This document shows, piece by piece, positions 3,602 to 62,942 of a stretch of 64,000 bases of DNA (the first letter of the stretch is position 1; every line of letters starts with the position of its first letter). The translations under genes and the position numbers were made by a program. The stretch comes from Leucoraja erinacea (lineage: Eukaryota): the NCBI RefSeq assembly GCF_028641065.1, contig NC_073379.1, forward strand, positions 21,886,001-21,950,000, in the 5' to 3' direction. The notes below the pieces were generated by a model. It saw only the letters and a program-made list of their open reading frames with translations, did no database searches and was not told where the DNA came from.

Positions 3602-4139
3602 TAAGCCTTTCCATTCAATATATCTGTCCAAATATCTTTTGAATGGTCTTATTTAACGTGCTTCAACTATTTCCTCTGGTAGCTTATACCATATACCCAC
3701 CACTCTGTGTGAAAACGTTGCCCCACACGCTCCTATTAATTATTTCCCCTTTGACCTTAAACTTATGCCCTTTTGTCCTCTTTATTGTCCTACCATGCAA
3801 AAAAGAGGATGTTCATATCTATTCCCCTCATAATTTTATGAACCTCTTCTCAGCCTCATGTAATGCAAGGAATTAAATCTAGCCTGTGCAATCTCTTATT
3901 TAGTTTAGTGATGGGGTCAAGGAAAGAGTGTTCATGTCGCGGTCCTGTTTCCACCAAGCTTTCCACCACCACGCACAAGAAGCGCAAGACGCAACTGCAT
4001 GCATTTGCCAAGAAGTGTGTTCAGCTCTGGCTGAACAATTTCTAATCTTGTGATGTGGACTCTAAGAAATTTAGTGATACAGCATAGAAACAGGCTCTTC
4101 AGCTCATTGTGTCCACGTCGCCCATCAATCACCCATATA

Positions 4140-4687: not shown

Positions 4688-5281
4688 CATCTCCAACAAG
4701 AGAGTGCCTAACAATATTTCCATATTTAGGATTAGAGATACAGCGTGGACACAGGCCCTTTGGCCCAACGAGGTCCACGTCGACCAGCCAGCCCCGTAGA
4801 TGTTCCATATTCAACAGCATTAGCATCTCCAAGATTCCTATCAGCAACATCCTGGTGGTCACTATTGACTAGAAACTCAACTGAGCTAGACACAGAGGTT
4901 CTATGGCTACAAGAACAAGTCAGAAGTTAGGCATCTTGCAGCAAGTGATTCACCACCATTTTCTTCTCCCATCAAAAAGCATGTGAAAAGTGCACCTCCA
5001 ACATAAAGTGAAGGGGGAAAAGATTCAATAGGAATCGGAGGGGTAACTTTTTCACTAAAAGGGTAGTGGGTGCATGGAACAAGCTGTCAGAGGCAGGGAC
5101 TATCCCAATGTTTAGGAAATAATTAAACAGGTACATGGATAGGACAGGTTTGGAGGGATACGAGCCAAATGCAGGCATGTGGGACTGGTGTAGCTGGGAC
5201 ATATTGGCCAGTGTGGGCAAGTTGGGCCGACGGGCCTATTTCCAGGCTGTATGAATTCTACGATTCTATAACTCAAGAAAT

Positions 5282-5335
5282 GGGGTGGGAGATTGCAACC
5301 TTCACATGGTCCACCCTGTTTCGACTAATGACATC
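5282..5335 (+). ncRNA. Minimal HDV/CPEB3-like self-cleaving ribozyme fold (copy 1)
   Basis: P1 GGGGTGG/CCACCCT (G1.U wobble), P2 GATTGCA/TGACATC (2 mismatches in this copy), P3 ACC/GGT, L3 TTCACAT, tiny P4 TTTCGA, putative catalytic C5325. Confidence 0.75.
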
Positions 5336-5415
5336 AACCCAACATGCACAAACAAATAGATCAAATAGAACAAGTTGACCTACAACTTTAGGCTGTGCAC
5401 GCCATACGCTAGAAG
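5282..5415 (+). mobile_element. ~135-bp SINE-like retroposon headed by an HDV-like ribozyme, copy 1
   Basis: 13-bp TSD AACTCAAGAAATG (5270-5282 / 5416-5428), (GAA)n tail, homologous to 23845-23983 and 55111-55241. Confidence 0.85.
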
Positions 5416-5996
5416 AACTCAAGAAATGCAATAGCATCCAAAACAGAGCAGACTAATTAGACTGGCGTCCACAAAACATCACTTCAGCACAGGCATGCGG
5501 TTGCCACCACATGTTGCATCTACCACATGTTGCATCTACCTCATGCACAAGTTACTCATCCACACTAGCTCAACAAATAACCAACACCTAACCCCACCCT
5601 CCAAATCCAAGAACTCTTACATCCAAGGAGGGCCACATTAATATGGAAAAACAACTAGCTGCAGATCCCCAACTAAATTATATATCATTTAGAAATGCAT
5701 CAACGATCTGCTGCTTTTAAATCCTAGAACTCGAGACATTAGTGGAACAGAAATATATTTACCAAAGGCTCACAGTGAGTGCCAATCATTGTGGGAAATT
5801 GGTTATGGCCGATAAATGGGTCTTGCTACCCATCAAATGAATGAATTAGAAGAAGTCAATGACCAGTAAGCTATACATGGGCAGCCAAGAACTGCAATTT
5901 TCAGATGTAGTAGAAAAAGCTGGCTTATCTTGATATAAACATTTTGAAATTAAGCTTCCAATATATATTTTTTTAATCCATCAAAATGTTACTTAC

Positions 5997-22390: not shown

Positions 22391-23844
22391 TCGAAACACT
22401 GAATGAGTCTATTTTCAGCAGGCAGCATTAATTTCTATGAATCCTGCAATAAATTTACAAGTTGCTACTATAACTAAATGCCACCAATCGATTCAGCCTC
22501 ATGAGATACATTAAAAATGTTGGTTTACAACATGGTATGACTAACTATTTAGTTAGCAGTTGATATATGGAAAATATCTCTTGAGCGTTGGAAACGCTGA
22601 ATGAATCTCTTTGCAGAAAGCAGCATTCACTTCCATGAATTTAGTAGTGACTTTTCAAGGCAAGGTGCGACAATCAAAGAAATGACTCCAATCGATTCAC
22701 CTTCATTTGATACATTAGAAAAGTTTGTTTTCAACAGGTTATTACTAACTATATAACTTTAATATATCTCTAACTAGAGGTCTAAATATGGAACATAACT
22801 ACAGTTTTGGAAACACTAAATAAGTCTGTTTGCAGTAAACAACATTCACTTCCATAAATCTTGCAATAACTTTTCAGGGCAAGGTAGTACAATCAAATAA
22901 ATTAATCCAATTGATTCAACTTCATGAGATACATTAAATAAGTGAGTTTACATCATGTAAACTGCAACACCTCTCCCTTTTCTGTAATAAATTCTATTAA
23001 CCATTCCTCAGCCCATCCGATCAAGATCTTGCTGTAATTTTTGACAACCATTTTTATTATCTACATTTCCACCCACTTTTGTGCCATCAGCAAACTTGCT
23101 GATCATGCCTTGTACGTTCTCATCCAAATAATTGGTATAGAAGACAAGCAGTAATGGGCCCAACATTGAACCGTGAGGAACACCACTAGTCACAGGCCCC
23201 TGAAAAGCAACCTTCCACCATTCCTTCCATTAAGCCAATTTTCTATCCATTCAGCTAACTCTGTTTTGATCCCATGCGATCTAACCTTTCGGGACAGCCA
23301 ACCATGCAGAACTTTTTTGAATGCTTGTACTTGTATATGGCTTGATTGAACGCATGTATGGTGTGATTAGATGTAAACAAAGCTATTCACTGTATCTTGC
23401 CATACCTGACAGCTATAAACCAATGTCAATATGTATTACGAAGACTGCCTTCTACACCGCCACCGCCCCTCTCGATCCCCTACGATACTGAGCCTACGTA
23501 TGAAGCCCCACATTTTATTTACCCATTCTTCAGGACCTTGGCATCATCACAAAGCCTGGCAAATATTGTCCCTTCCTTATTGCTCTCCAAGAGGGAATTG
23601 CTAGTCAGTCATATGGTATTTAACAGTCAACAGCATTGGTGTAGAAACAAAGAACTGTAGATTGTGGTTTATACCAGATATAGACACAGTGTAGGAGTAA
23701 CTCACTGGGTTAGGCGGCATCTCTCAAGAAAAAGAAGAGATGACGTTTCAGGTTGGGACATTTCTTCTTTCTCCAGAGATGCTGCCTGATGTGTTAAATT
23801 ATTCCGGCACGTTGTGCCTTTCAACAGCATTGAGTAGGTTTGGA

Positions 23845-23898
23845 GGGTTGGGAGATTGCAACCTTCACGTGGTCCACCCTGTTTCAATGAATGCAATC
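23845..23898 (+). ncRNA. HDV/CPEB3-like ribozyme fold (copy 2; catalytic C mutated to T)
   Basis: GGGTTGG-GA-GATTGCA-ACC-TTCACGT-GGT-CCACCCT-G-TTTCAA-T-GAA-TGCAATC; perfect P2 and P3, L3 identical to the CPEB3 loop as recalled. Confidence 0.75.
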
Positions 23899-23983
23899 AG
23901 CCTGGTGTGCACAATCAAATAAGATCAAATAGAACAAGTTGTCCTACAACTTTAGTCTGTGCACGCCATACGCAAGAAGAAGA
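23845..23983 (+). mobile_element. HDV-ribozyme-headed retroposon, copy 2
   Basis: 13-bp TSD AGTAGGTTTGGAG (23833-23845 / 23984-23996); tail GCCATACGCAAGAAGAAGAA. Confidence 0.85.
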
Positions 23984-24580
23984 AGTAGGTTTGGAGACAC
24001 AAGAACCTCTGCCCGGGTTCATAAGTTCTAGGAGCAGACTTAAGCCATTCAGCCCATCAAGTCTACTACTCCATCATTAAATCATGGCTGATCTATCTTT
24101 CCCTCTCAACCCCATTCTTTCGTCTTTTCCTCATAACCTCTGACACTCATACTAATAAAAAATCTGTCAGTCCACCTTAAAAATATCCATTGACTTGGCC
24201 TCCACAGCCTTTTGTGGCAATGAATCACCACCCTATGACTAAATAAATTCTACCCCATTAGGTAATGCTGGGCAGATGTCCTCTACTGAAGGTGTTAAGT
24301 GAACCAGATGGATTTTACAACAAACATTTCTTGAAGTTATCAATGCTGTTGACTAGTAAATTCAAGTTAATTAACTGAATGCAAATTTTGCAGCTGCTGT
24401 GGTGTAAGTCAGATTCAGTTCTCTATTTTAGTCCAGGCCACTGTATTACCATTTCCATAAGGCACCAGCGCACGACTACCTTTTGTGGGCAGGGACTTCC
24501 CAAATCAGTGCTAGCACTAAAGATAGACACAAAATACTGGAGTAACTCAGCGGGTCAGGCAGCATCTCTGGAGAAAAGGA

Positions 24581-34196: not shown

Positions 34197-34943
34197 ACCT
34201 ATGTATTGTATGCACAAACAAAGAATTTCACTGTACCTTGGTACATGTGACAATAATGCATCATTGATCTTGGTGCATTGGGCTCATACCGTTAAGATAA
34301 AGGGTGATTGTTTAGTTTAGTTTAGTGATACAGTGTGGAAACAGGCCCATTGGTCCACCAAGTCCAACTCCAACGAGCTATCAAAGGTACGCTAGTTTTA
34401 TCCCACATACTAGGGACAATTTACAGAAGGCAATTAACCTACAAGTCTTTTGAATATGCGAGAAACCTGGAGCACCCGGGAAAAACCCACGGGGTCACAG
34501 GTAGAATGTAAAAACTCCACACTGACAGCGTCCATACTCAGGATCAAACTTGCGCTGTAAGGCAGATCCTTCTTCAGACTTTGGCCCGCCAAGTCTGCGT
34601 CGACCCGCGATCACCCCGTACACTAGCACTATCCTACACACCAGGGGCAATTTACAATTTCACCAAAGTGGTACGTCTTTGGAGTGTGGGAGAAAACCGG
34701 AGCACATGGAGAATACCCACGCAGGTCACGGGTAAAACGTACAAACTTCATACAGACAGCACCCGTAGTCAGGATTGAACCCGGGTCTCTGGCACTGCCA
34801 TGCAGCAAATCTACCACCGACCCCTATGTCGCCACTGGCATTGTATTCTCTTTTGCGTTGGAGGCTTTTGATTTCCAGACGGATTTGATACAGTGATGTA
34901 GATTGTCGGATAGACCATTCTTTGACTCTCTCTCTTCCCGCAG

Positions 34944-35351
34944 GAGGCATGGGGGAGCCGGTGGCCGTGTTAGTGCATGTCCGGGACAGGGTGACCAGTA
35001 CTGTCGGAAGCTCCGTGGTATTGCCCTGCAATTTCAAATCCGACTACTCCGACTACACGACCATGGACATTACTGTCATCTGGAAGGTGAAGGTGTTTTA
35101 CACCGGCTCGGTTTTGTTCAACGTGACCAACAGGAGCAATGGCGGCAAGGACTTCGTGGACGAAGTTCACACAAATGTCAATGGCCGCTACAAACTGGCC
35201 GGGGACCCGAGGCAGAGGGTCGCCTCGCTGGAGGTGGAGAATGTTACACTGGGTGACAGCGATCAATACTTCTGCCGCGTCGAAATCAAACGCCAGGGAT
35301 TACGCGCGTTCATGCACGAGTCCAACCCTGGAGTCACCCTGGAAATTATAG
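34944..35351 (+). CDS. Siglec-15-like exon 2 (V-set Ig domain)
   Basis: Acceptor cccgcAG, donor GTAAAA, phase 1/1; VVLPCNF..IW..GRYKLAGDPR..ASLEVENVTLGDSDQYFCRVE with the F-strand Arg. Confidence 0.92.
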
Positions 35352-37513
35352 GTAAAAACCACAAGCACCACTCAGTTTACCACTGTCTCTGTCAGTTTAT
35401 CTCTCCCCTCTATTTATTGCTTTTGTCTCTCCTCTTGTCAGTCTCTCTGTTGGTCCCTCTCTCTATTTCTGTTGTATTGTCCCCATCCTCTTTTCGCTCT
35501 CTCTTACCCTTTCTTATACTGCTCCTATAAGTCTCTCCTGCTTTCAGACTCGCTTTCCCATCTGTGTAAGAAGGAATTGCATAAGACATACAATTAGAAG
35601 TAGGCCATTCGGCCCATCCGGTCTACTGCGCCATTCAATCATAACATTGACCATGTGGGTTTTCTCCGGATGCTCCTACCACACTCCAAAGATGTGCCAC
35701 TTTGGTTAAATTGTAAATTGTCCATGGTATGTTTTTCCCTCTCAACCTCATTCTCCTGCCTTCGCCACAAAACCTCTGATGCCCTTCCTAATCAAGAAGC
35801 TATCAATCAGCTACCCAATAACTTGGCCTCCACAAGCAATGAATTCCACAGATTCACCACCGTCTGGCTAAAGACAGTGGTGCATGTGACAATAAATGTG
35901 AACTTGAACTTGAACTTCAACTTGAAGAAGTTCCTCCTCACCTCCATCCTAAAGGTACCACTTTTTATTCTGAGGCTGTGTCCTCTGGTTCTGGCCTCTC
36001 CCCTTATCGGAAACATCCATTCCATGTCCACTCTATCTAGGAATTTCATTATATGTTAGATATCAATGAGGCACCACCTCACCCTTCTAAAAATCCAGCA
36101 AGTACAGGCCCAAAGTCTTTAAAGGCTCCACATGAGCTCCTCAAAGCTGAGAATGGAAAGAACGCTTCCTCCACCATCAGACATTAGTAATCTAGACTGA
36201 GTTCATCAACAATCCATTTGTTTCATGGTCATAAATGGCTTTTTAGTCCAGATTTAATTAATTAACAATTTCAATTTCTCAGCAGCCAGGGTGATGTTGA
36301 ACTAATGTCAATAGAGCCAGTGAAGACAGGGGGCTGGAGTAGCTCAGCGGGTCAGGCGGCATCTGTGGAGAACATCACAGGAGGGAGCCGTGAGAGAAGG
36401 AATCACAGAACTGTTGGATAGAGGAGGAGAATTTCTTCATAGACATACCCCGAGGAGATTTCACAGTGGAGCAGTGAAATATAGAAATAAGGAGTTGCAG
36501 ATGCTGGTTTACAAAAGAAGACACAGATCACTGGAGTAAATCCCCAGGTCAGATGGTCTGACCCACTGAGCCACTGCAACACTTTGTCTCTCAGTAGAGC
36601 AAGTCTCTGATCCTTTGCTTCTGCATCAGTGATGTCCACCTCACTAACTTCCCCCGTCTTGTATCTAGTCACTCACACAGGAATGTTTGTGGTTCCATAA
36701 CCTTATCAATATATGGAATAGGAATACTTTATTGTTACATGTGACTAGGCACAGTGAGAATCTTTGCTGCATAACCAATGAATGTAAATACACTGACCAA
36801 GTTACAAAGCATGCCGGCTCCTCCAAAAGGATGGGGTGAAAGGTGAGGACTATGGGGACACTGTCCCTGTTGCGACTGGGGGGGGAGGGGGAGCAAGAGT
36901 GGAGCTGCGGGATAATGAAGAGACACATGTGATGGCCTCATCTATGATGGAAGAGGAGAATCCCTGTTCCCTGAAGAATGAGGACCTCGGACGTCCTGGT
37001 ATGGAACACCTCATCTTGGGCACATATGCGACATAGACAGAGGAATTGGATAGAGTCTTTGGAGGAGGCAGGGTGGGAAGAAGTGTAGTTCAGATCGTTG
37101 TGGGAGATGGTGGGTTTATAATAGATGTCAGTCGACTGTCTGGCTCCAGTAATGGAGACGGTGAGATCCAGAAAGGGGAGGGAGGTCAGAGATAACTACC
37201 AGCACGTTCCATACACCCACCTCCCTCTGTGTACATAAGTTGCCCCTCAGGTTCCTATTAAATCGTTCCCCTGTAACCTTAAACTGATGGTGGATGAGGC
37301 ATCAGTTGTATGCTGCATCTGCCACACTTCTGTGCTGAAGTGTCAGCCTCAATAATGAGCTTAATTCTCTTGTGTTCTGTAACTTCCCTTTCTTTGAGCT
37401 CTAGTTTTGGTCACTTGCTTGTTCCCACATCCACGGGTTCCTGTTTAATAAACCAACCCCACCACAGAACATTGCAACTTCCTTTAACCTTTGCTTTGAT
37501 TCTTTGTTCCCAG

Positions 37514-37897
37514 GCTCACCCATCATCCTCCGGGTATCTGTTAAAGCCATTAATACCACGCAGCCTATTGTGCAGTGCCTGGCAGAGGGACAACCCTTCC
37601 CGAAAATCATATGGATTGATCCCCAAAATAACAAGCTTCCTGCGAACAGCAGCGACACCTCAGTAACGTCGGGGCCGGGGAAGTATCAGATCTTGGGAGA
37701 ACTGCGTAACCCAAAGTTTGGGGGGACCTACACATGTGTGGTGGTCAGTGACCAAGGAAACAGCAGCCGATCTATCTATCTGCCCAGCAAGGGGCAAGTC
37801 CGGCATCTGCTGCTTTACATCATTGGGATCCTAGTTGGAAGTGTCATTCTGGTTATCCTGGTTGTTATTCTCTTACTGATGCAGAGGAGAAAGAGAG
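37514..37897 (+). CDS. Siglec-15-like exon 3 (C2-set Ig domain plus transmembrane helix)
   Basis: Acceptor ttcccAG, donor GTGAGT, phase 1/1; PIILRVSV..CLAEGQPFP.I.W..GTYTC..G.S..SIYL followed by a hydrophobic TM and RRKR. Confidence 0.92.
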
Positions 37898-38834
37898 GTG
37901 AGTTTCTTTGTGAGGGAAGAGGGAGGAAGTGGGGGGGGTCACTGGTGGAGTAGATAAATGTTATCAAGTTATATTGCATTTATTACAAAGATACATTTTA
38001 GATGCCACATAAGGTTTAGAAAGGAGAAAATCTCACAACCCCAAGTTACTGTAGTAGTTGAAGTCAAAGTGAAGGTGTGCATCTCTATGTTTATGTTCTG
38101 TGATTAAGGTGAGAGGGGGGGGGTGGGGAGGCTTAATAGGAACGTGAGGGGCAACTTATTCATGCAGAGGGGCATTCGGACAAGTACATTAATGACATTT
38201 AAAAGACACTACAAGGATAGGATAGGTTTAAAGAGGTATATGCCAAATGCGGGCAAATGGACATGTTATGTTGGAGCTTCTTAGTCAGCTTGGATGAGTT
38301 GGGCCGAAGGGCCTGTTTACATGCTGTATGATTCTTTGGTTGGAGGATGTGGAAAGAAGAGACTGGGGAGGAATAGACAAAATGGCGATTGGGAGGAGGA
38401 GATCCAGGGATGAGAGATGGGAGGGAGAGACCAAGTGAGGGCGCAGCGGTAGAGTTGCTGCCTCATAGCGCCAGAGACCCGGATTCAATCCTGACAACAG
38501 GTACTGTCTGTACAGAGTGTGTACGAACTCCCTGTGACTACATGGATTTCCTCCCACATTGCGATGACTTACAGGTTTGTAGGTTAATTGGCTTCTATAA
38601 ATTGTCCCTTGTGTGGAGGAGAGAACTTGTTTACGGGGATCGCTGGTCAGTGGCGACTATGTGGGCTGAAGGGCCTGTTTCCACTCTGTTGCTCTAAAGT
38701 AAACTAAGGAAAGGTCTTGGGATGGTTGGGAACAGAGGCATGAATGGGGATGAGAAATAGTTGACCACCAACAGGAAGAAAGGTGGAGATGAATGTGCAG
38801 GAGTTAGAGGGAGGAATTATCACTAGGTTTCTTA

Positions 38835-42197: not shown

Positions 42198-42489
42198 GGT
42201 GGTTGGGACTTTGGGACTCGGTGGCAGAGGTGGGGCCGGAGCTGAGGTTCAGGGGTGTCGGGGGCAAGGGGGAGGGGGGGGGGCGGGGTGTGGTGATCGC
42301 TGCTGGGCTCAAGATGTTGATCTGGAATGAACGCCTCTCTTTCAGTGGTGCCCTGCGCGTCAGTGCAGGACACTGAGGGCAGCGATAAAGTACCAGAGGC
42401 TGGCACCGTGAGTTAACACAGCAGCAGAGAAACACAGCTCGGAACCCACTTCATCGGACAGACTCACTTTCAGAACAAACGGTCTTGTG

Positions 42490-46370: not shown

Positions 46371-48646
46371 TTTCCTGTCCTGTGATTCACAGTGGATGAT
46401 TTATCCACTACAGTGTAATGCACAGTTGCACTTTAAACTCGTTGCACTCACTGCCCACTTTACTGAGTGAATGCATTGCTGCCGGGAATGGGTCATGCCA
46501 GAGTATCGTTGTTATGTCAACAATCATCGGTTAACATAAATAAAGAATGCTATTGGTTCACACTGTGTAAAACATTAACCGATATGTAAAGGCGAGTTAG
46601 TACTAAAAGACACGTGAAGAGAAGGAAATTACACTTTTTTTTGAGGAATCAGCACACTATGGATGCTGGTTTACTAAAAGAACACAGTGCTGGAGTAAGC
46701 AAGTCAGGCAGCATCTCTGGTGAACACGGATAGATGACGTTTCAGGTTGGGAACCATCTTCAGACTGATTGGTGTGGGTGTGGGTAGACGGTTGGCGGCG
46801 CGACTCTCGTCAGCAGCGGCCTCTGCAACCCGTCTGAATTTTTATTATTTTTTGTCTATGTTTTTATGTAGTTTTTGTTATTTTTTGTTGGGGTATGTGT
46901 GTGGGGGGGTTGGGGTGGGGTGGGAGGGAGGGGGTAACCTTTAATCTCTCCCTTCACGGGAGACCCGACCTTTTCTTTGTCGGGTCTCCGTTGTCGTTGG
47001 GGCTGCAACGAGGAGTGGCCTCCAACAGGAAGACCGGGGGCTCTGGTGCCGACGCGTCGCGGAGCTGGTCGAGTCCAGAGCGGGTGTAGCGGTGGTGGGG
47101 CGCTGCTGCTGCTGCGGCCCGACCTCCGGAGATTCGGAGGCTGCAACTGCGGGTCTGGCGGACGGCAGCACCGGGAGCCCGCGGGTCCCTGGAGGGAGAC
47201 CGCTTTTCAGGGCTCTCGCAACGGCCACTTCTCCCGCCCGAGTTGCGGGGTCGAAGAGCTCCTGGAGCGGGGCCTGACATCACCGCCCCGCGCGGCTTGG
47301 AATGGCCGCGGGACTCTGCGAGCGCACGCCGGGGGCTCTAACATCAAGAACCCGGCGTGCGACCTTGCATCACCCGGCGTGGCTTTAATGGTCGCGGGAC
47401 AATCGCCATCGCCAGCCGGGGGCTTTGTCTTTGACTCTGACATGGGGGGGGAGAGAGTGCAGTGGAGAGATAAGTTTATTTGACCTTCCATCACAGCAAT
47501 GTGATGGATGTTTATGTAAATTATGTTGTGTCTTGGGTCTATTTGTTTGTAATGTTTGGCTGCAGAAACGTCATTTCGTTTGGACCTCAAGGGGTCCAAA
47601 TGACAAACAAATTGTATCTTGTATCTTGTGTGGGTGGGAGAGAAAGCTGGAAGGGCAGGATAAAGAGGCAGGATAAGTATGGTAAGCGAGACAAAGTGCC
47701 GGTGAAACTCAGCAGGTCAGACAGCATCTCTGGAGAACATGGACAGATAATGTTTCAGGTCGGGACATTTTTTTCAGACCGAAACGTCACCTATCCATGA
47801 ATTCCAGCGATACTACCTGACTTACTCCAGTACTTGGGTCCTTTTTGCGTATTCACGAGATTTGCAGTTCTTTGTTTCTACACCTGGTAAATGAGAGGTG
47901 GATACAGGTGAGAGGTCGGGTTCATTGACAGGTGGGTATAAGTGACAATGGCTAGAGAGGAAAAGGAAACAATAGGATGGCAGATGAGGAGAGAAGAAAA
48001 GTGCAACGTGAAGCCAGAGGAAGGGATGTATGTGGAAGGGGACGGTGGGTGGAAATGGGAAATATGTGTGCGCACTGGGATAGGGCAAAGAGAGGGTAAA
48101 AAGAGGGGTGGGGGGGGGGTGTTAGCTAAAATTGGAGAATTCACGATTCATACCTGTGGCAGATTAATTTAGAGGGAAATAAAAGGAAAAACACAAAGTT
48201 ATAGACTTTGCAGGTTTGCTTCAAGAGACCTTATTGCATGATATCATGGAGAGACGGTGGCAGAAATGTCTGACTTCACAGCAGAAATGGCCGACAGTTA
48301 TACTGTGCAATAAACAATGTTTGTATTTTGTTATATTCAGCCATATGAAAATATATTATCTACCTCATGGAGATCAATTATTTCATTAGACATAACATAC
48401 GTTTTGCTTATGTTAATCTTATTCCAACACCAGAAGGTTAATACAAGTCAAGCACGACTTCCGGTGGCGGCATGCTTTGCTAGCAGTCGCAAACCTTTTA
48501 GCTCCGCTGAAAAAATCGCGATTTTTCGCGTTAAATCGGGTCTGGAGGTCGGGACCGATCTTAAAGACTTACCGGAGTTTCATGTCGCGGTGCTGATGAC
48601 GTCATTAGTAAGTGCCGTGGATTTAACGGAGGGAAACCGATTTTAA

Positions 48647-49657
48647 ATGAAAAATACAGCTACAGGTCAGAGCCCTCAGAGGAAAGTGATAAAACAACTT
48701 CTGAAGACTAAGGAACACCAAGAAACTGCAACACTAACCTCTGGAGTGGATTCTGGAATGGCTACACGATCTAAGACTGAGTTGATCACAAAAGAGAAAA
48801 CTGAAATGGAGGAATTAAGGAACTCGGTAAGAGATTTGAAAGAGGATGTGAAAGCTGGAAATTTAAACTTGATTGCTGGTAATGAAAAAATACTCGCGGG
48901 CATTGGCGCTCTGCAAAAAAAAGTTGATGATGTGCAAGAAGAGCTAACGGGGAAAATTACTAAGGTGGCAGAAGAGTCCACAAAGATGTTTGAGGCTGTG
49001 CATGAAACTATTTCCGCAAATGCAAATGCAGTGAAAGATTTGGAAGCTGTTGTGGAAGAGATGGCTGGAGAAATGGAGGCAATGAAGTCAGAATTACACA
49101 GCCTTAAGAGCCAATTTACAAAAATATCTGATAAATGTGTTGAACTAGAAGCTCGCTCAAGACGTCAAAATATACGAATACGTGGAGTGAAAGAGGGAGC
49201 TGAGGGGGAAAACGCTCGTGAGTACACTGCCAATTTAATTAAACATGTACTCAATTTACCTGAAGCACCAGTAATTGAAGAAGCACATCGACTACCTAGA
49301 TTTAAACCAAGATTCCAAGGAGAACAAGCCTACCCACGACAGATTATAGTCAAACTTCGGGATATCCCAACAGTGGAAGCGCTGTTGAAAAAAATTAAAT
49401 ACGGAGAGAAGATGATATATGGAAATGATTCTATTAAACTTCTACGGGACTACCCTTATGAGATTGTGCTAAAGAGAAGAAAGTTCTCACAGACCAGAGA
49501 AGCTCTCTACGGTGTCAAGGGCGTCATATCTGGAGTGTTTTATCCGGCTAGGATGCGTATCACTTTTAAGGGAATCTCAAAAACATTTACTAATCCGGTA
49601 GAATCCCTTAAATACGCTAAAGAAATCGTTGCTAAGGCAGCTGCAGAAGAAGATTGA
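48647..49657 (+). CDS. L1 ORF1p (coiled coil plus RRM), intact 336 aa
   Basis: Heptad-rich N-terminal half; LEARSRRQNIRIRGVKE, AHR, PRQIIVKL and YPARMRI motifs. Confidence 0.92.
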   Translation: MKNTATGQSPQRKVIKQLLKTKEHQETATLTSGVDSGMATRSKTELITKEKTEMEELRNSVRDLKEDVKAGNLNLIAGNEKILAGIGALQKKVDDVQEELTGKITKVAEESTKMFEAVHETISANANAVKDLEAVVEEMAGEMEAMKSELHSLKSQFTKISDKCVELEARSRRQNIRIRGVKEGAEGENAREYTANLIKHVLNLPEAPVIEEAHRLPRFKPRFQGEQAYPRQIIVKLRDIPTVEALLKKIKYGEKMIYGNDSIKLLRDYPYEIVLKRRKFSQTREALYGVKGVISGVFYPARMRITFKGISKTFTNPVESLKYAKEIVAKAAAEED

Positions 49658-50591
49658 TCACCAGACGTCATGAACTAATTAATGTGCTTATTCCCCCAAC
49701 AAGAATATTAGTAGAAAATGTAAAAAGTGAATAACATCAAGATTTAAAAATGGCTATTTGCAACAGATTTTCCATGAGACTTGTCTAGACATTATAATCT
49801 TCTCTCGAATTTAATTCAAGGACATGCGATGTTTAAGCCAGGATAACAGAAGTATGCAGATCTGCCGAAGCTGAGAGAGAGTGAAAAACATCACATGGCC
49901 TACATATTTTCACAGACTGTTACAAAATATAGAGAATTATTACTAATTAATTACTAACAATACTAATACATAATACATAAACTGTTATTGATAAATATGT
50001 GTTATAACGTAGATAACATTGTAATCTCACAGGTTCCGCAGCTCGAGTGGGGAGGGGAAGAAACTCAGACACCTGGCTTAATTCCAGGAGCCTGACTCTG
50101 GTTAACCCTTTCAACGAACAGCTCACTTTTAACAATACTAAAACCAATTACAAATAGTTAAGAGATAAAGAGAGAGGAATATGTGTAACTGAATAATTGA
50201 TTAGATTTGATAAGTCGGAATGAAACATATATATATATATATACTGCAATGGGGTGAAATAGAACTGATTTGGAAACGGTACCTACCCCCTAGGTTATGA
50301 GCAATAAATTCAGCGGGGCTAACCTCATAACAGCTACGCCGGAAGCAATATTGATGTCATATCCCACAGACGAGTGGGCCACTCACTACGGTGTCGGAAA
50401 TCCAGACACCGTACATTTATTTTATATACTTTTTTTTTTTACTACAATATGTCACATTTATGTGTTTTTTTTTCAAGGACAATCGCAGAGGGGAACTACC
50501 AAGAAAGTCTATAATATAAATGCTTCCAAAATAACCAGAGTCCTGAGGTATGGATGCACCATAATAAGTACGGTCATTAAAATTGGTAAAA

Positions 50592-53500
50592 ATGTATGAC
50601 GACAATCAAAGGAAAATGGGAGGAGTCACACTATGTAGTTGGAATATAAGGGGTATTAATGAACCTATTAAAAGGGGCAAGATACTAGCTCAGTTGAAAG
50701 CATACAACACGGACATTTCGTTCCTACAGGAAACTCATCTTAAACATCAAGATCAGACGAGATTGAGGGCTAACTGGATAGGCCAAACATTTCACTCTTC
50801 ATTCACTTCTAAATCTAGAGGTACTGCAATTATTATCCGTAAAGGAATTCCATTTAAATCAAAGAATATTATTTCAGATAAGGAAGGGAGATATCTTATA
50901 GTAGCAGGAGAGATCAATAATATGCCAATTACGCTGGTAAATATATATGCGCCCAACTTTGATAACCCTCAATTTTTTAATAAAATTTTGAATAAAATTG
51001 CCGAATTTAATTATCAAAATGTTATAATCGGAGGAGACTTCAACTGTGTTTTAGACCCTTATTTAGATAAATCGATGCAAAAACAAAAAGGTAATATGAA
51101 ATCTAAAACCAGTGAACTCTTACATACATATATGGAAAACACAAATATAGCAGATGTATGGAGGATTGCAAATCCGACGGGAAGGGACTACTCGTTCTAT
51201 TCAACAGTGCATAAAACATATTCACGGATAGATTATTTTCTTGTGGATACAAAATTAATTACACACACTATGAATCCTAAATACCACATTAATGCGATTT
51301 CAGATCACTCTCCTTTAACCTTTGTTTTAAAATTAGAGGGAATATCTATGAATAAATCGTTCTGGAGGTTTAATTCGCAACTTTTAAAAGACCCACAAGG
51401 GAGTATATATCTAAAAAAACAGATGGACTTATTCTTTGAGATAAATGATACACCAGATATATCCCCCACGCTATTATGGGAATCCTTTAAAGCATTTATT
51501 AGAGGAGTCATTATTTCATTTCAAGCTTACCAAAATAAAAAGAATAAGAAAGAACAAAGACATTTAGAAGAACAAATAAAACAATTAGATACAGATAATG
51601 CTAAAGATCCAACTATGGATAAACATAATAAAATCCTATTATTGAAATTCAAGCTGAATAAATTATTGTCAGAGAAAGTTATAACATTATTCCAAGTTAC
51701 AAAACAAGAACACTTTGAATTCGGGGACAAACCCCACAAACTCTTAGCACGCCAGTTGAAAAAACGGGAAAAAGAGAATGCAATACTAAAGATTAAATCA
51801 GATAGTGGGGAATTATTAACACTACCCAAGGATATCAATAAAAGATTTGCTCAATTCTACGAAAATCTATATACATCTAAAACGTCAATAGATAATAATA
51901 AAATTTCAGAATTTCTGGAAGATTGTAACCTTCCAAAATTAGAATTGAGGGAACAAGAGGAACTGGGAGCAATAATTACTTCTAAGGAGATAGAAGACAC
52001 AATAAAAACACTAAAGAATGGTAAAACACCAGGACCAGACGGATTCAGTAGTGAATTCTATAAAGCCTTTTATGATATAGTTACCCCACGATTACAGAAA
52101 ATGTATACACACGCTTTTAAAGAGCAAAGCTTACCCGAAACATTAGCAGAATCAACGATCACATTAATACTTAAAAAAGATAAAAACATAGAAGAACCAG
52201 GCTCATATAGAGCTATTGCTTTGTTAAATACGGATCAAAAAATAATAGCGAAAACACTAGCCAGTAGATTAAGCAGGTACGTTAGTAGATTAATAAATAG
52301 AGATCAAACAGGATTATACCTAAGAGACACTCATTCAATAATTTGAGACGTTTGCTTAACATAATGTACTCACATAAACCTCACGACCAAGAGTTATCTA
52401 TTATCTCACTGGACGCAGAAAAAGCGTTTGATCAAGTAGAATGGGATTATATGATTAAAGTAGTGCAAAAATTCCAATTGGGAGAAAACTTTATCGCATG
52501 GATAAAACTATTATATAACAAACCTACGGCTAGAATATTAACTAATAATATCTTATCCTCGAAATTTGAACTATCAAGGGGCAATAGACAAGGATGCTCA
52601 TTATCACCGCTGTTATTTGCTTTGGTAATTGAACCCCTTGCTGAAAAAATAAGAACACATCCGGATATTTATGGTTATAATACAAAATACTCAAAGAATA
52701 AAATATCCCTATATGCCGATGATGTACTACTGTACATCACAAAACCACAAATTAGTATACCAAACATATTAAACTTAATTGAGGACTTTGGATCCTTTTC
52801 AGGATATAGAATAAATTGGAACAAAAGTGAAATTATGTCGATAAAACCAAAAGACTCAACACAGCTTCGGAAATTTCCCTTTAAAATAGCTACAGAAAAA
52901 TTCAAATATTTGGGAATTGAAATTACTAGAAATTACCAGGATATGTTTAAAGCCAATTATAATCCTTTACTCAAGAAATTGAATAATCTGATTAAATTCT
53001 GGAAAACACTTCCGATGTCCTTAATAGGCAGAATAAATGCTATTAAAATGGTTTTCTTACCACAAATTCTATACCTATTTCAATCAATACCTATATACCT
53101 CCCAAAAAAGTTTTTCAAAAAATTGGACTCAGACATTACAAATTTTATATGGGATTATAAATCCCATAGAATACAAATAGCACACCTTAATAAACGAAAA
53201 GAGCTGGGGGTCTAGCGCTCCCTAACTTTATGTATTATAACTGGGCAGTAAATATTAAAAATATGATTCACCTGCTGGACAATTCTGCACAGCAGGCGGA
53301 CTGGATGGTAATGGAAAAAGGGGACTGCTCCCCGAGTAATATAGGAGCGACCATCCTCTCACCAACAAATTTGAATAATAAAAATTATAATAAAAATCCA
53401 ATTATACATAACACAATAAGAACATGGAAACAAATAAAACAGACTTTAAAATTAAGAAACCTATCTCTTTTAATACCAATAGTCAATAATCCATCGTTTA

Positions 53501-54381
53501 AACCATCAATCATAGACAAATCATTTATACAATGGGAAAGAATGGGAATTAAAACGCTCGAAGATCTGTATGAATTGGGGAATTTACTATCATTTCAACA
53601 ACTACAACTGAAATATAATTTGAAAAATAACCAATATTTTAAATATCTTCAAATTTGTGATTATCTGAAAAAACACACAAAAGACTATCATAATATGTCT
53701 TCCGACTTATTGGATGAAGCAATGAAGACCAAGGCGGAATCAGCTAATTTAATATCGTACCTATATAATATCATTTTAAACATAGAAATACCCACAACAG
53801 ATGGAATTAGAAAAGATTGGGAACAAGAATTAGCTATAAAAATCTCAAAAGAGACCTGGGATAATCATTTACTACAGGTGCATAAATGTTGGATCAACGT
53901 ACGACATACGCTCATCCAATTTAAAACATTACATAGATTATATTATTCAAAAACTAAATTAAATAAAATCTTCCCTAATGTTTCACCAATCTGTGATAAA
54001 TGCCTATGTCAAGAAGCTACCATAGCGCACTCTTTTGTTTTTTGTACAAAAATCCAAAAATTCTGGTATGAAATATTTGATATTTTTTCAAAATTGATCA
54101 ATATAAAACTGGTACCAAAACCAGAATGGATTATCTTCGGAATATCGGAAGGTAACCCTGAATTAAACGTGTTTCAGAAGAATTTAATTAATTACGGGCT
54201 AATAATGGGAAAAAAGCTTATACTTAAATTCTGGAAAAATGCGCCGACACCAACAATAAAAATGTGAATATCAAATATGTTTGAAACATTACATCTGGAA
54301 GAGATGAGATTCCTCCTAGCAGGTAAAGCAGACCAATTCCAAAAGACGTGGTCTATGTTTCTGGACCTATTACAAGTATGA
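50592..54381 (+). pseudogene. L1 ORF2p (APE endonuclease, RT, CCHC) with two frameshifts and one nonsense codon
   Basis: SWNIRG, LQETH, GGDFN, SRIDY, SDH; RQGCSLSPLLF, YADD; CDKC..H....C. Breaks at ~52315, ~53208 and TGA at 54265-54267. Confidence 0.93.
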
Positions 54382-54811
54382 GGTGCAATAGTAATCTAAA
54401 AAAAACAAATATATAAATAAGCGGAATCAGGACCTGGTAACGGGAGGTAAAATAACAAAAACAGACTTGGTTGGTAGTCCCCTTTCTGCGGAGTTTAATG
54501 TTATAATAGAGCGATTGTTTCTATTTTCTCTTTCTCTCTTTTCTAGGGTCTATTTTCTCACTTTACTTCCTTCTCTAACTTCTTTCCTAAGGGGCTTTTT
54601 TTTCCTTACACTCTTGCACTGCACGACTCTCTTGCACTTTCTTTACTTTCCTTACTTCTACCTTTTTCTTAAAGCTCAAAAAAAAAAAATGAAGCGGTAC
54701 TAAAAATGTATTAAGATATATGTGTTGTGTAGAATTGTAATTTACCGTACTTCTAATAAAAAAAAAATAAAAAAATAAAAAAAAATAAAAATAAAAATAC
54801 AAGTCAAGCAC

Positions 54812-57370
54812 AATACAAGGGCATCTCGACATTATTATATATCACCTGTCAGGTGGCCCACGCCACCATCCCCTCTCGGAGCCAATCATAAGCCTCCCAT
54901 TTACTGCAACATATCTATGCTACTAGCGGTAGGAGGCGCGGGTGATCTACTGTGACTTTTCACAAAAGAAAAGAAACTTCCTTATCTCCTCTACTACTAT
55001 TTCATGTTTACATTTACCGTCCATCCTTCAACACATTCCCAGACAAGAGGTAATACGTCTAATCTTTGCCGATTCCCCCAACCTCTTCCGCACCTGGTTA
55101 AGCGAGACCTGGGGTGGGAGATTGCATTCGTCAGGTTGGACCACGTGAAGGTTGCAATCAACCTAGCGAGCACAAACAGAAGATCAAACAGAACAAGTTG
55201 TCTTACAACTTTAGGCTGTGCACGACATACGCAACAAGAGGAAGCGAGAGCTGCCAATTGTCACATCCAAAATACCCTTCCGTTACCTTTTCAGTTCCAA
55301 TCAAAATTAAGTAAGGAAGGATATTAACTTTTCTTCCACAGTTCCCTCCTTGATCTCTATGATCAACACATAGTAAGAAAGGATTTTAATATTTTCTCTC
55401 ATTAATCAGTTGCAAAAATGGAGGCATACATGTCCGATTATAATTTTGGTTGGAACCCGTCCTTGAGCAAGCAAAGAGATACCTCTTTGTACATGCAAAG
55501 GGATATGAGCACACACCAAACATTCTAATCAGATAAGGAAGCTTGTTTTTCTTATAGCAGCGAGTTCACTGTGTTCTGTGAGTTGTTTGTAGGATTTCAT
55601 ACTGCAACAAACTTTCTACCCTCCTCCTATTTCTTGCAACTATCAGGATGCCTCACTTCTCCGTCATATCCTCTCTGATCCCACACGGTGTTAGTATATT
55701 CATAAGAATTCGATTCTACTAAGATAGTTAATAACACTTTTTTTTATCACTACAAAATATTACGGTTCTTGTGTTTTCTTCTCTTCGAGGGTTCCGTCTG
55801 AGTGATGCAGTTTACATCTGGTGACATGTACCCAATCAGGTTTTTCTTTTACTTTTACTGCTATTCATAATAGCAGCACCAAATATGGTCCTTTCCATCT
55901 AGAGGAGGGAGAATCTTTACTCATTGCTCGCACATAAACCTGATCTCCTGGTTTAAACGGGTGCATATTTCCTTCTGTTTTTATTTTTATTTGTTGTGTA
56001 TGTGTGTGGGTGTGTGTGTGGGGGGCGGGGGGTGGGGGAAACTTTTAAAATCTATCCCCTGCATGGAGAACCCGGCCATTTCCCTGTCGGGTCTCCGTTG
56101 TCATTGGGGCCTAGCACCGTGGAGCGACCTCCAGCAGGAACGACCTGGGGCTGCAGTCGCGGAGCCTGCGGACGTACTCACCATCATGGAGCTGGCCGAG
56201 TTCGGAGCGGGAGGAGCGGTGGTGGCGCGCTGCTGCATTCCGACCCCGGGGATTCAGAGGCTTACCGCAGGTCTGGTGGACGGTGACACCGGAGCCCGCG
56301 GGTCCCTGCTGGGAGACCGCTTTTCGGGGCTTCCGCAACGGCGACTTCACCCGCCCGAGTTGCGGGGTTGAAGAGTACCTGGAGCGGGGCCTTACATCAT
56401 CGCCCGGCGTGGCTTGGAATGTCTGTGGGACTTTGCTAGTGCCCGCCGGGGGCTCCAACAACAAGACCCGGAACGTGGCCTTGCATCGCCCGGCGTGGCT
56501 TTAATGGCCGCGGGAGAATTGCCATCGCCCACCGGGGGCTTTGACTTTGACTCTGACATTGGGAGAGGAATGGGAAGTGCAGGGGAGAGATAGGTTTTTG
56601 CCTTCCATCACAGCGAGGAGGAGATGCGCTGTGATGGATGTCTGTGTAAATTGTGTTGTGTCTTGGTTCTTTCTTGTGTGTATGACTGCAGAAACAACAT
56701 TTTGTTTGAACCTCAATGGGGTTCAAATGACAAATAAATTGCATTGTATTGTATTGTATTGTATTCTGCCGGAAGGACCTGGTGCCTGCTTAACCTTCTC
56801 ATGTATTGTATTCTGCCAGAAGGACCTGCGCCTGCTTAACCTTCTCATAGATTTTACCACCTGTTTCACTCATGGCTTGAGCATATTTTAAGGATTTTTC
56901 ATCATTCCAAATTAGGACTACCTTCTCAGGAGTCATCGAGGGTCGGGTTCCTCTTGTCATAGGTCATCCCATCAAAATCTTGTGAGGTATTAGGCCCGTG
57001 TTTCTATTTTTCTGATTTCTCAGGGCATACATCGCTATGGCATGGTGTCTGGCCACAACAACCTATTTGGCATACTTTAGCCAAAGTTGCTTTTTCCCCT
57101 CCACTTACTCTTTCTACCATCCCTGAGGGCTATGGTTGATATGGTATGTGTAATTTCCACTGGAACCCAAGAGCCTTCGACAAGTTCTGAACCAATTTAC
57201 TGGTGAAATGAGTTCCTCTGTCACTGTTTATTCCCATGGATATCCCGAATCTAGGTATTATTTCTTTCATTTAAAATATTGACTACCGTCCTTACATCAT
57301 CCCTTTTTGTGGGGTATGTAGCGGCAGATTTTTATATTGTTCAAGAGATTGCTCCCTCCAGCCACCAAGG
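54812..57370 (-). mobile_element. Class I (gamma/epsilon-like) endogenous retrovirus remnant: integrase and probable env
   Basis: Minus-strand KEIIPRFGISMGINSDRGTHFT...HIPYQP*PSGMVER (D-x35-E, ~57110-57270); HPFKPGDQVYVR..RWKGPYLVLL..AVKV..WVH (~55810-55965); ECLVCAHIP env-like motif at ~55500. Confidence 0.75.
55111..55241 (+). mobile_element. HDV-ribozyme-headed retroposon, copy 3 (ribozyme core inverted)
   Basis: 12-bp TSD AAGCGAGA(C/G)CTG (55100-55111 / 55242-55253); 55127-55152 is the reverse complement of the P3-L3-P1'-J4/2 core. Confidence 0.8.
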
Positions 57371-61529: not shown

Positions 61530-62942
61530 CAATGCATTCAGAAAGTATTCAGACCCCTTCACTTTTTCCACATTTTGTTACGTTACAGCCTTATTCTAAA
61601 ATTGATTAAATTCATTTTTTTATCATCAATCTACATAAAATACCCCATAATTAAAAAGCGAAAACAGGTGTTTAGAAATTTTTGCAAAGTAATTAAAAAT
61701 AAATAACTGAAATATCACATAAACATAAGTATTCAGACCCTTTACTCAGTATTTTGTTGAGGCACCTTTGGCAGAGATTACAGCCTCAAGTCTTCTTGGG
61801 TATGATGCTACAAGCTTGGCACACCTGTGTTTGGATAATTTCTCCCATTCTTCTCTGCAGATCCTCTCAAGCTGTCAGGTTGGATGGGTAGCGTCGATTC
61901 ACAGCTATTTTCAGGACCCTCCAGAGATGTTCGATCGGGTTCAAGTCCGGGCTCTGGTAGGGCCACTCAAGGATATTCACAGACTTGTCACAAAGCCACT
62001 CCTGCATTGTCTTGTCTGTGTGCTTAGGGTCATTGTCCTGTTGGAAGGTGAACCTCCGCCCCAGTCTGAGGTCCAGAACGCTCTGGAGCAGGTTTTCATC
62101 AAGGATCACTCTGTACTTTGCTCCGTTCATATTTCTCTCGATCCTGACTAGTCTGCCAGTTCCTGCCACTGAAAAACATCCCCACAGCATGATGCTGCCA
62201 CCACGTTTCACCGCAGGTATGGTATTGGCCAGGTGATGAGCGGTGCCTGGTTTCCTCCAGACGTGGCACCTGGCATTCAGGCCAAAGAGTTCAATCTTGG
62301 TTTCATCAGACCAGAGAATCTTGTTTCTCATGGTCTGAGAGTCCCTTAGGTGCCTTTTGACAAACTCCAAGTGGGCTGTCATGTGCCCTTTACTGAGGAG
62401 TGGCTTCCATCTGGCCACTCTACGATAAAGGCCAGATTGGTACAGTGCTGCAGATATAGTTGTCCTTCTGGAAGGTTCTCCCATCTCCGCAGAGGAACTC
62501 TGGAGCTCTGTCAGGGTGACCATCGGGTTCTCAGTCACCTCCCTGACCAAGGCCCTTCTCCCCCGATTGCTCAGTTTGGCCGAGCGGCCAGTTCTACGAA
62601 GAGTCCTGGTGGTTCCAAAATTCTTCAATTGAAGAATGACAGAGGCCACTGTGCTCTTCGGTACCTGCAATGCTGCAGAAATTGTTTTATACCCTTCCCC
62701 AGATCTGTGTCTCAACACAATCCAGTCTCGGAGGTCTACGGACAATTCCTTCGTCTTCAGGGCTTGGTTTTTGCTCTGACATGCACTGGCAACTGTGGGA
62801 CCTTATATAGACAAGTGTGTGTACCTTTCTATATCATGTCCAATTTAATTTACCACTAGGGGACTCCAATCAAGTTGTAGAATCATCTCATGGATAATCA
62901 TTGGAAACAGGATGAACCTAAACTCAATTTTGAGTGTCATAG
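61530..62942 (-). mobile_element. Tc1 (IR/DR-type) transposon, one end truncated
   Basis: TA then CAATGCATTCAGAAAGTATTCAGACCCC terminus; inner direct repeat AAGTATTCAGACCC at ~61727. Confidence 0.9.
61745..62760 (-). pseudogene. Tc1 DD34E transposase pseudogene
   Basis: ORF 61867-62745 has paired-like HTH, WSDETK, QDNDPKH and SPDLNPIE. The start codon appears to be ATG>CTG at 62760; a frameshift near 61870 cuts off the ...GASTKY end. Confidence 0.88.

Follow-up and report, generated by a model that had tools for sequence, protein, structure and literature searches.

A dispersed retroposon family headed by a predicted minimal HDV-like ribozyme

Does the short repeat at position 5282 of this stretch of Leucoraja erinacea DNA (contig NC_073379.1, positions 21,886,001 to 21,950,000; hereafter the window, 64,000 nucleotides in all) begin with a self-cleaving ribozyme that defines its own 5' end? 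A first-pass annotation proposed that three copies of a retroposon of about 135 nt start exactly at the cleavage-site G of a minimal HDV/CPEB3-like ribozyme, have (GAA)n tails and individual target-site duplications (TSDs), and lack a tRNA head or pol III boxes. We confirmed the repeat. There are three copies on the + strand and no others in the window, and all three align from the same first G, end in GAA-type tails, and have their own TSDs of 11-13 bp (Table 1). A 30-nt head pattern and a 43-nt tail pattern each gave 3 hits, against 0.00 expected in shuffled sequence. A sensitive blastn search of the window found only the copies themselves, and scans of metagenome contigs (with a head pattern and a tail pattern) and of prokaryote genome contigs found no more, so covariation within the family could not be measured.

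Table 1. Positions of the retroposon copies and their parts within the window (the ribozyme parts are predicted).
Feature	Position	Strand	Remarks
Family 1, copy 1	5282-5415	+
Upstream TSD of copy 1	5270-5281		AACTCAAGAAAT
Head of copy 1 (minimal HDV/CPEB3-type fold)	5282-5335	+	nt 1-54
G1	5282	+	first base of the element; predicted cleavage site is 5' of this G
P1	5282-5288 / 5311-5317	+
J1/2	5289-5290	+
P2	5291-5297 / 5329-5335	+
P3	5298-5300 / 5308-5310	+
L3	5301-5307	+
G37-U38 (P1.1 side)	5318-5319	+
P4 remnant	5320-5324	+	5 nt
J4/2	5325-5328	+	C-T-A-A in this copy
Variable linker	5336-5359	+	between the head and the 3' domain
Structured 3' domain	5340-5403	+	long-range helix, consensus GGCGTGCACA / TGTGCACGCC
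Hairpin within the 3' domain	5372-5388	+	AAGTTGT-CCT-ACAACTT, 7 bp
3' end and tail	5404-5415	+	ATACGC plus short GAA-type tail
Downstream TSD of copy 1	5416-5427		AACTCAAGAAAT
Family 1, copy 2	23845-23985	+	(GAA)4 tail; ends ambiguous by 1-2 nt
TSD of copy 2	23833-23845 / 23984-23996		AGTAGGTTTGGAG
Family 1, copy 3	55111-55241	+
Inverted segment of copy 3	55127-55152		between the two P2 arms
TSD of copy 3	55100-55110 / 55242-55252		AAGCGAGA[C/G]CT; 10 of 11 match
Family 2	3913-4069	+	157 nt, tail AAGAAA
Head of family 2	3913-3964	+	P1 GGGGTC/GGTCCT, P2 GGAAAG/CTTTCC, P3 GTG/CGC, L3 TTCATGT, then GT-TTCCA-CCAA
TSD of family 2	3904-3912 / 4070-4078		TTTAGTGAT; perfect, 9 bp
L1-like element	about 48457-54800		TSD ACAAGTCAAGCAC; A-rich tail

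All three copies are decayed, which the first-pass annotation did not note. In copy 3, the 26 nt between the P2 arms (GATTGCA...TGCAATC) are the reverse complement of the family sequence, with a 5-nt deletion, so no ribozyme fold remains. Neither copy 1 nor copy 2 passes an HDV descriptor as it stands. Copy 1 has two mismatches in the 3' arm of P2 (5331 and 5332) and L3 G25A (5306), and copy 2 has G4T, G42A, and the J4/2 C changed to T (C44T).

Nevertheless, the consensus inferred in the first-pass annotation is right. To obtain majority letters across genomic copies, we aligned reads from one DNA run and three RNA runs to positions 5180-5530 at 85% likeness, which piles reads from all genomic copies onto copy 1. 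The majority letters were G instead of A at 5306 (about 95%), and C instead of A at 5331 and A instead of C at 5332 (about 97%), which gives CACGTGG at 5306 and restores TGCAATC in P2. The resulting consensus keeps a 7-bp P1 that starts with the G1.U36 wobble, a 7-bp P2, a 3-bp P3, a 7-nt L3, and C-N-A-A before P2', and C22-G37 is present. The common polymorphisms of the head lie in unpaired positions (G8/A in J1/2, G42/A in the P4 remnant, and G, T or A at position 45, or 5326, the second base of J4/2) or keep the pair (A32/G opposite U5, so that both U-A and U.G pair). In contrast, the linker has the densest polymorphism and indels in the family and a dip in contig depth, and the 3' domain is again conserved.

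To ask whether the fold is more than chance, we wrote an HDV descriptor that requires G1, a 7-bp P1, J1/2 of 0-5 nt, P2 of 5-7 bp, a 3-bp P3, L3 of 7-8 nt, and 6-60 nt before P2'. The strict form also requires G after P1', a C in L3, and C-N-R-A before P2'. The consensus head passes the strict form. In 3 Mb of Markov-random sequence, the lenient form starts 43 times (1.4e-5 per position) and the strict form never does. Also, the nested minimum-free-energy fold of the consensus head (ViennaRNA) is exactly P1+P3 (−12.8 kcal/mol), which leaves the 5' strand of P2 free to pair with P2' (7 bp, −7.4 kcal/mol as a duplex). On the other hand, Rfam gave no HDV, CPEB3, or drz hit, either at the gathering score on the window or at E<=10 on copies 1 and 2, where there were only chance hits. 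We consider this to be weak evidence against the fold, because the copies searched are mutated and lack P4 and because these models probably cannot encode the pseudoknot.

The consensus closely resembles the mammalian CPEB3 intronic ribozyme (Rfam RF00622). An NMR study of CPEB3 (PMC4836649) names U20, U21, C22, A23, G25, and U26 in L3; G37 and U38, with P1.1 made of one G-C and one U-U pair; and a 4-nt J4/2 of C57, G58, A59, and A60. Family 1 (the three-copy family) has UUCACGU at positions 20-26, G37-U38, and C44-G45-A46-A47, with no indel in nt 1-38. A published mouse primer that is stated to lie 18 nt from the cleavage site (GTTCACGTCGCGGCC; PMC10919898) confirms TTCACGT. The helices appear to differ from those of CPEB3 while staying paired, and the 18-nt P4 is replaced by UUCGA. 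P1.1 is weak (one G-C pair plus U-U). Natural HDV-like ribozymes that lack P4 are documented (PMC10879173). As the antigenomic HDV ribozyme seems to have C-U-A-A in J4/2, the CTAA subfamily, which includes copy 1, would be compatible with activity.

Further support for the fold comes from a second, sequence-distinct retroposon in the window (family 2), which we found by a relaxed scan anchored on the L3 motif. Its body is unrelated to family 1, but it too starts at G1 directly after its TSD, and its first 52 nt fold in the same way, with a 6-bp P1 and a G1.U34 wobble. (L3 would be TTCACGT but for CpG decay.) Of 17 helix pairs, compared with family 1, 4 are unchanged, 3 are changed on one side but still paired, 8 are changed on both sides and still paired, 1 is broken, and 1 is a gap. 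These pairs were counted on a hand-made structural register because MAFFT misaligned L3 between the families. L3, the GUUUC after P1', and the C-N-A-A are conserved. Segment 3930-3944 (nt 18-32) is identical to the mouse Cpeb3 primer at 13 of 15 positions, and both differences are C>T. Although family 2 is a single decayed copy, it supplies independent comparative support for the structure. Other hits of the relaxed scans, at 42461, 62510, 27426(-), 11829(-), 57508(-), 15263(-), and 9216(-), occur at the chance rate and have no repeat or TSD context. A hit at 48116 lies 340 nt outside the L1-like element, and a 21-nt similarity of family 2 to the 5' UTR of that element (48575-48595, E = 0.18) has no P1 partner.

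Are there RNA molecules that begin where the fold would cut? In two single-cell RNA runs of the same species label (X23 and X24), 1405 and 1158 reads, respectively, carry an unaligned part of median 31 nt directly before 5282. Its consensus is the 30-nt template-switch oligo ending in GAATGGG (agreement about 0.8), and the aligned part then begins GGGGT. These reads are about 85% of the sense-strand depth at the head, although this share may be inflated by how the library keeps short cDNAs. DNA contigs show only heterogeneous flanks at this place. Strand invasion would need GGG upstream of G1 in the RNA, and the flanks are heterogeneous; a structure-induced stop of reverse transcriptase would fall 3' of the fold, not at G1. 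So, abundant cellular RNAs really end at, or within a few G's of, nt 1. (As the oligo ends in GGG and the element starts with GGGG, the end is placed to within a few bases only.) Heterogeneous read-through ends are also present (298 at 5281 in X24). On the 3' side, reads continue from the family tail GAAGAAGAA (in unaligned ends at 5417), or from 5409, into A runs, which may be true polyadenylation or internal oligo-dT priming. These data fit self-cleavage but cannot by themselves exclude a transcription start.

The remainder of family 1 also appears to be structured. With majority letters, nt 55-134 fold into a long-range helix of about 10 bp that encloses the 7-bp hairpin (−22.7 kcal/mol, z = −4.2 against shuffles), and the consensus T at 5378 restores a pair of this hairpin. 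ATACGC and (GAA)n follow. This layout seems typical of the 3' modules that are recognized by stringent LINE reverse transcriptases; we presume that it is the recognition module for a partner LINE. The first-pass annotation suggested an Ingi/Vingi- or RTE-like partner. The partner is unknown, and no LINE in the 64-kb window shares the head or the tail: the only full-length LINE there, which is L1-like, has an A-rich tail and no such head.

We propose that these elements, which have no ORF, are promoter-less, non-autonomous non-LTR retroposons with two working modules: a head that is very probably an HDV-like ribozyme of the CPEB3 type, with P1, P2, P3, and P1.1 and with a 5-nt linker in place of P4, and a structured 3' domain that ends in (GAA)n. 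In this model, a copy in any transcribed region is read through by the host polymerase. The head folds as it is made and cuts the chain immediately 5' of G1, which releases an RNA whose first base is the first base of the element and which still carries the whole ribozyme. The reverse transcriptase of a partner LINE then recognizes the 3' stem-loops and tail and copies the RNA into a new site by target-primed reverse transcription, which makes a TSD of 9-13 bp. The shared genomic 5' end, the TSDs, the conserved fold, the conserved head and tail around a variable middle, and the abundant RNA 5' ends are observed, while self-cleavage as the origin of the 5' end and the route of reverse transcription are inferred; we are fairly confident of this explanation. 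The three copies of family 1 in the window are mutated fossils.

A second possibility, which we consider unlikely, is that the 5' end is a transcription start. The element would carry an internal promoter (pol III as in ordinary SINEs, or a short pol II initiator such as trypanosome Pr77) and the fold would be a vestige that no longer cuts. RNA 5' ends at nt 1 would fit a start as well as a cut, family 1 contains a CACGTG palindrome in L3/P3', and Pr77 of L1Tc/NARTc is both a promoter and a ribozyme. Also, copy 3 kept the 5' end although its core is inverted, and if the inversion preceded retroposition, then its end was not made by this fold. However, ARAGORN found no tRNA, there was no tRNA, 5S, 7SL, or snRNA hit at E<=10 for copies 1 and 2, and matches to the A and B boxes (6/9) were no better than in shuffled sequence. 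CACGTG is absent from family 2. The two families share only the ribozyme core and differ throughout the helices, which is the pattern expected of RNA structure and not of DNA promoter boxes. An internal pol II promoter cannot be excluded.

Third, the head could be an active ribozyme that also serves another role, such as a binding site for the LINE protein or a promoter. Reviews describe binding by the R2 protein to, and IRES-like or promoter functions of, HDV-like heads, and in family 1 the head is as conserved as the 3' domain. This seems less likely still, and as the element has no ORF, an IRES role would be pointless. Finally, a chance resemblance in a hairpin-rich repeat, which the lack of Rfam hits and the chance-level hits of the relaxed scans might suggest, is very unlikely given the strict descriptor, the identity to CPEB3 of L3, GU, and CGAA at identical positions, the 8 compensatory changes in family 2, and the RNA ends at the predicted site.

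How do these elements compare to known systems? CPEB3 is a single conserved intronic locus in mammals, while family 1 is a dispersed high-copy retroposon; its head presumably works like the CPEB3 ribozyme and may be related to it, but it is not a member of that locus family. The minimal HDV-like ribozymes that lack P4 (Riccitelli et al. 2014; theta ribozymes) also keep the double pseudoknot core with P4 absent or vestigial, but they came from metagenomes and phages, with unknown or tRNA-linked roles. The NARTc/SIDER elements of trypanosomatids are non-autonomous non-LTR elements whose first nucleotides (Pr77) form an HDV-like ribozyme that frees the RNA from co-transcripts, but Pr77 is 77 nt and is also an internal promoter, and these elements derive from L1Tc/ingi by deletion; here the head is 54 nt and no promoter was detected. 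The R2 SIDEs (short internally deleted elements) of Drosophila are ORF-less parasites that keep the 5' HDV-like ribozyme and the 3' RT-binding end of a LINE, but they insert site-specifically in 28S rDNA and have a ribozyme of about 180 nt, while the elements in the window are dispersed, with variable TSDs. Hammerhead-bearing SINE-like elements (Schistosoma Sm-alpha) and animal retrozymes are short non-autonomous retroelements that carry a self-cleaving ribozyme, but of another class, with pol III or tandem/circular-RNA life styles and a cut that is not at the first base of the element.

Thus, ribozyme-headed non-autonomous retroposons are already known: reviews state that HDV-like ribozymes head R2, RTE, Baggins, and L1Tc elements and that R2 SIDEs, NARTc, and "some SINEs" use them. 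HDV-like ribozymes at the 5' end of LINEs and their deletion derivatives are known from insects, nematodes, trypanosomes, and R2 elements. What appears to be new is a P4-less head with the CPEB3 core sequence in a vertebrate. We found no paper that describes a high-copy, SINE-sized, promoter-less element in a jawed vertebrate that is built from only a P4-less ribozyme and a LINE-recognition tail, although key primary papers (Webb 2009; Webb and Luptak 2011; Ruminski 2011) were considered only through reviews.

A more speculative idea, which we think is possible but doubtful, is that the mammalian CPEB3 ribozyme is an exapted copy from this old vertebrate lineage of retroposon-borne ribozymes. 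The heads share its exact L3, P1.1 side, and J4/2 and its spacing over nt 1-38, and the match of family 2 to the mouse sequence lies at almost the same distance from the cut (one base nearer it). If so, the single "memory-linked" human ribozyme would descend from a SINE-like parasite, and the P4-less "minimal" HDV-like ribozymes would have a eukaryotic mobile-element source.

Read depth relative to the unique flank, which is only a rough proxy for copy number, together with the density of 3 copies in 64 kb, suggests tens of thousands of copies (of the order of 10^4-10^5). If the heads are active, they would make the origin of the mammalian CPEB3 ribozyme testable by comparative genomics, and they would be a natural, very small (about 54 nt) ribozyme of the CPEB3 type, useful for structure and engineering work. 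Also, thousands of introns in this genome would carry self-cutting sites, which could affect pre-mRNA processing and would yield an abundant class of small RNAs, for which the RNA reads already give a hint.

A repeat that is even more abundant than the family of copy 1 ends about 25 bp upstream of that copy. Its summed contig depth is up to 4.2 million, as compared to 21 for unique flank, and in other copies its 3' end continues as a CTATGA-type tail, as seen in the loose ends. Similar ends (of the form ...GGGCCTGTTTCC...CTGTAT) recur elsewhere in the window, including on the minus strand. The positions of this repeat and of the other features discussed here are listed in the table.

Table. 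Positions in the window of the features discussed here.
Feature	Position	Strand
Abundant repeat upstream of copy 1	5180-5255	
Loose ends with CTATGA-type tail	5244-5254	
Similar ...GGGCCTGTTTCC...CTGTAT ends	9086, 26603, 38674, 40161, 44180; also on the minus strand	
T-rich loose parts of RNA reads (run X24)	just before 5281	
RNA reads continuing into A	after 5409 and after 5417	
ORFs resembling immunoglobulin-superfamily exons	34922-35530 and 37504-37953	+
Relaxed HDV-motif hit	48116-48170	+
Full-length L1-like LINE	48457-54800	
ORF1 of the LINE	48647-49657	
ORF2 of the LINE, three frame-shifted pieces	50583-54267	
Target-site duplication of the LINE (13 bp, ACAAGTCAAGCAC)	about 48444-48456 and 54800-54812	
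Inverted loop in copy 3, with the 7-bp inverted repeat around it	55120-55159	
ORF resembling a Tc1/mariner-type transposase	61867-62745	-

The window also contains a full-length L1-like LINE, which has an A-rich tail and is flanked by a target-site duplication. Outside of the L1, we found a relaxed HDV-motif hit after a run of G's (an L3-like TTCACGA, then ...CCTGT...). This hit has no target-site duplication or repeat context, and as 3.6 such hits are expected per window, we count it as chance. Of the other open reading frames, one of 292 amino acids reads like a Tc1/mariner-type transposase, although it was identified by eye only. Two others read like immunoglobulin-superfamily exons followed by a transmembrane stretch. 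All four ribozyme-headed elements lie on the same strand as these exon-like ORFs, but four of four is not significant.

Next, we consider the RNA reads at the two ends of copy 1. At the 3' end of the element, RNA reads run into pure A (260 reads after 5409 in the single-cell RNA run X23, and GAAGAAGAA followed by A runs after 5417). In contrast, DNA contigs continue into mixed AT-rich flanks. This reflects either polyadenylated unit-length RNA or internal oligo-dT priming. Near the 5' end, 298 reads from a second single-cell RNA run (X24) have a T-rich loose part that ends in ...GC (agreement of about 0.39). These reads are unexplained, but they may reflect antisense polyadenylated RNA or a common insertion context.

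Finally, copy 3 carries an exact inversion of the loop between the 7-bp inverted repeat GATTGCA/TGCAATC, plus a 5-nt deletion. This is a hairpin-loop inversion. There was no abundant inverted subfamily among the joints listed in the read alignments, so the inversion is probably a private event that occurred after insertion.
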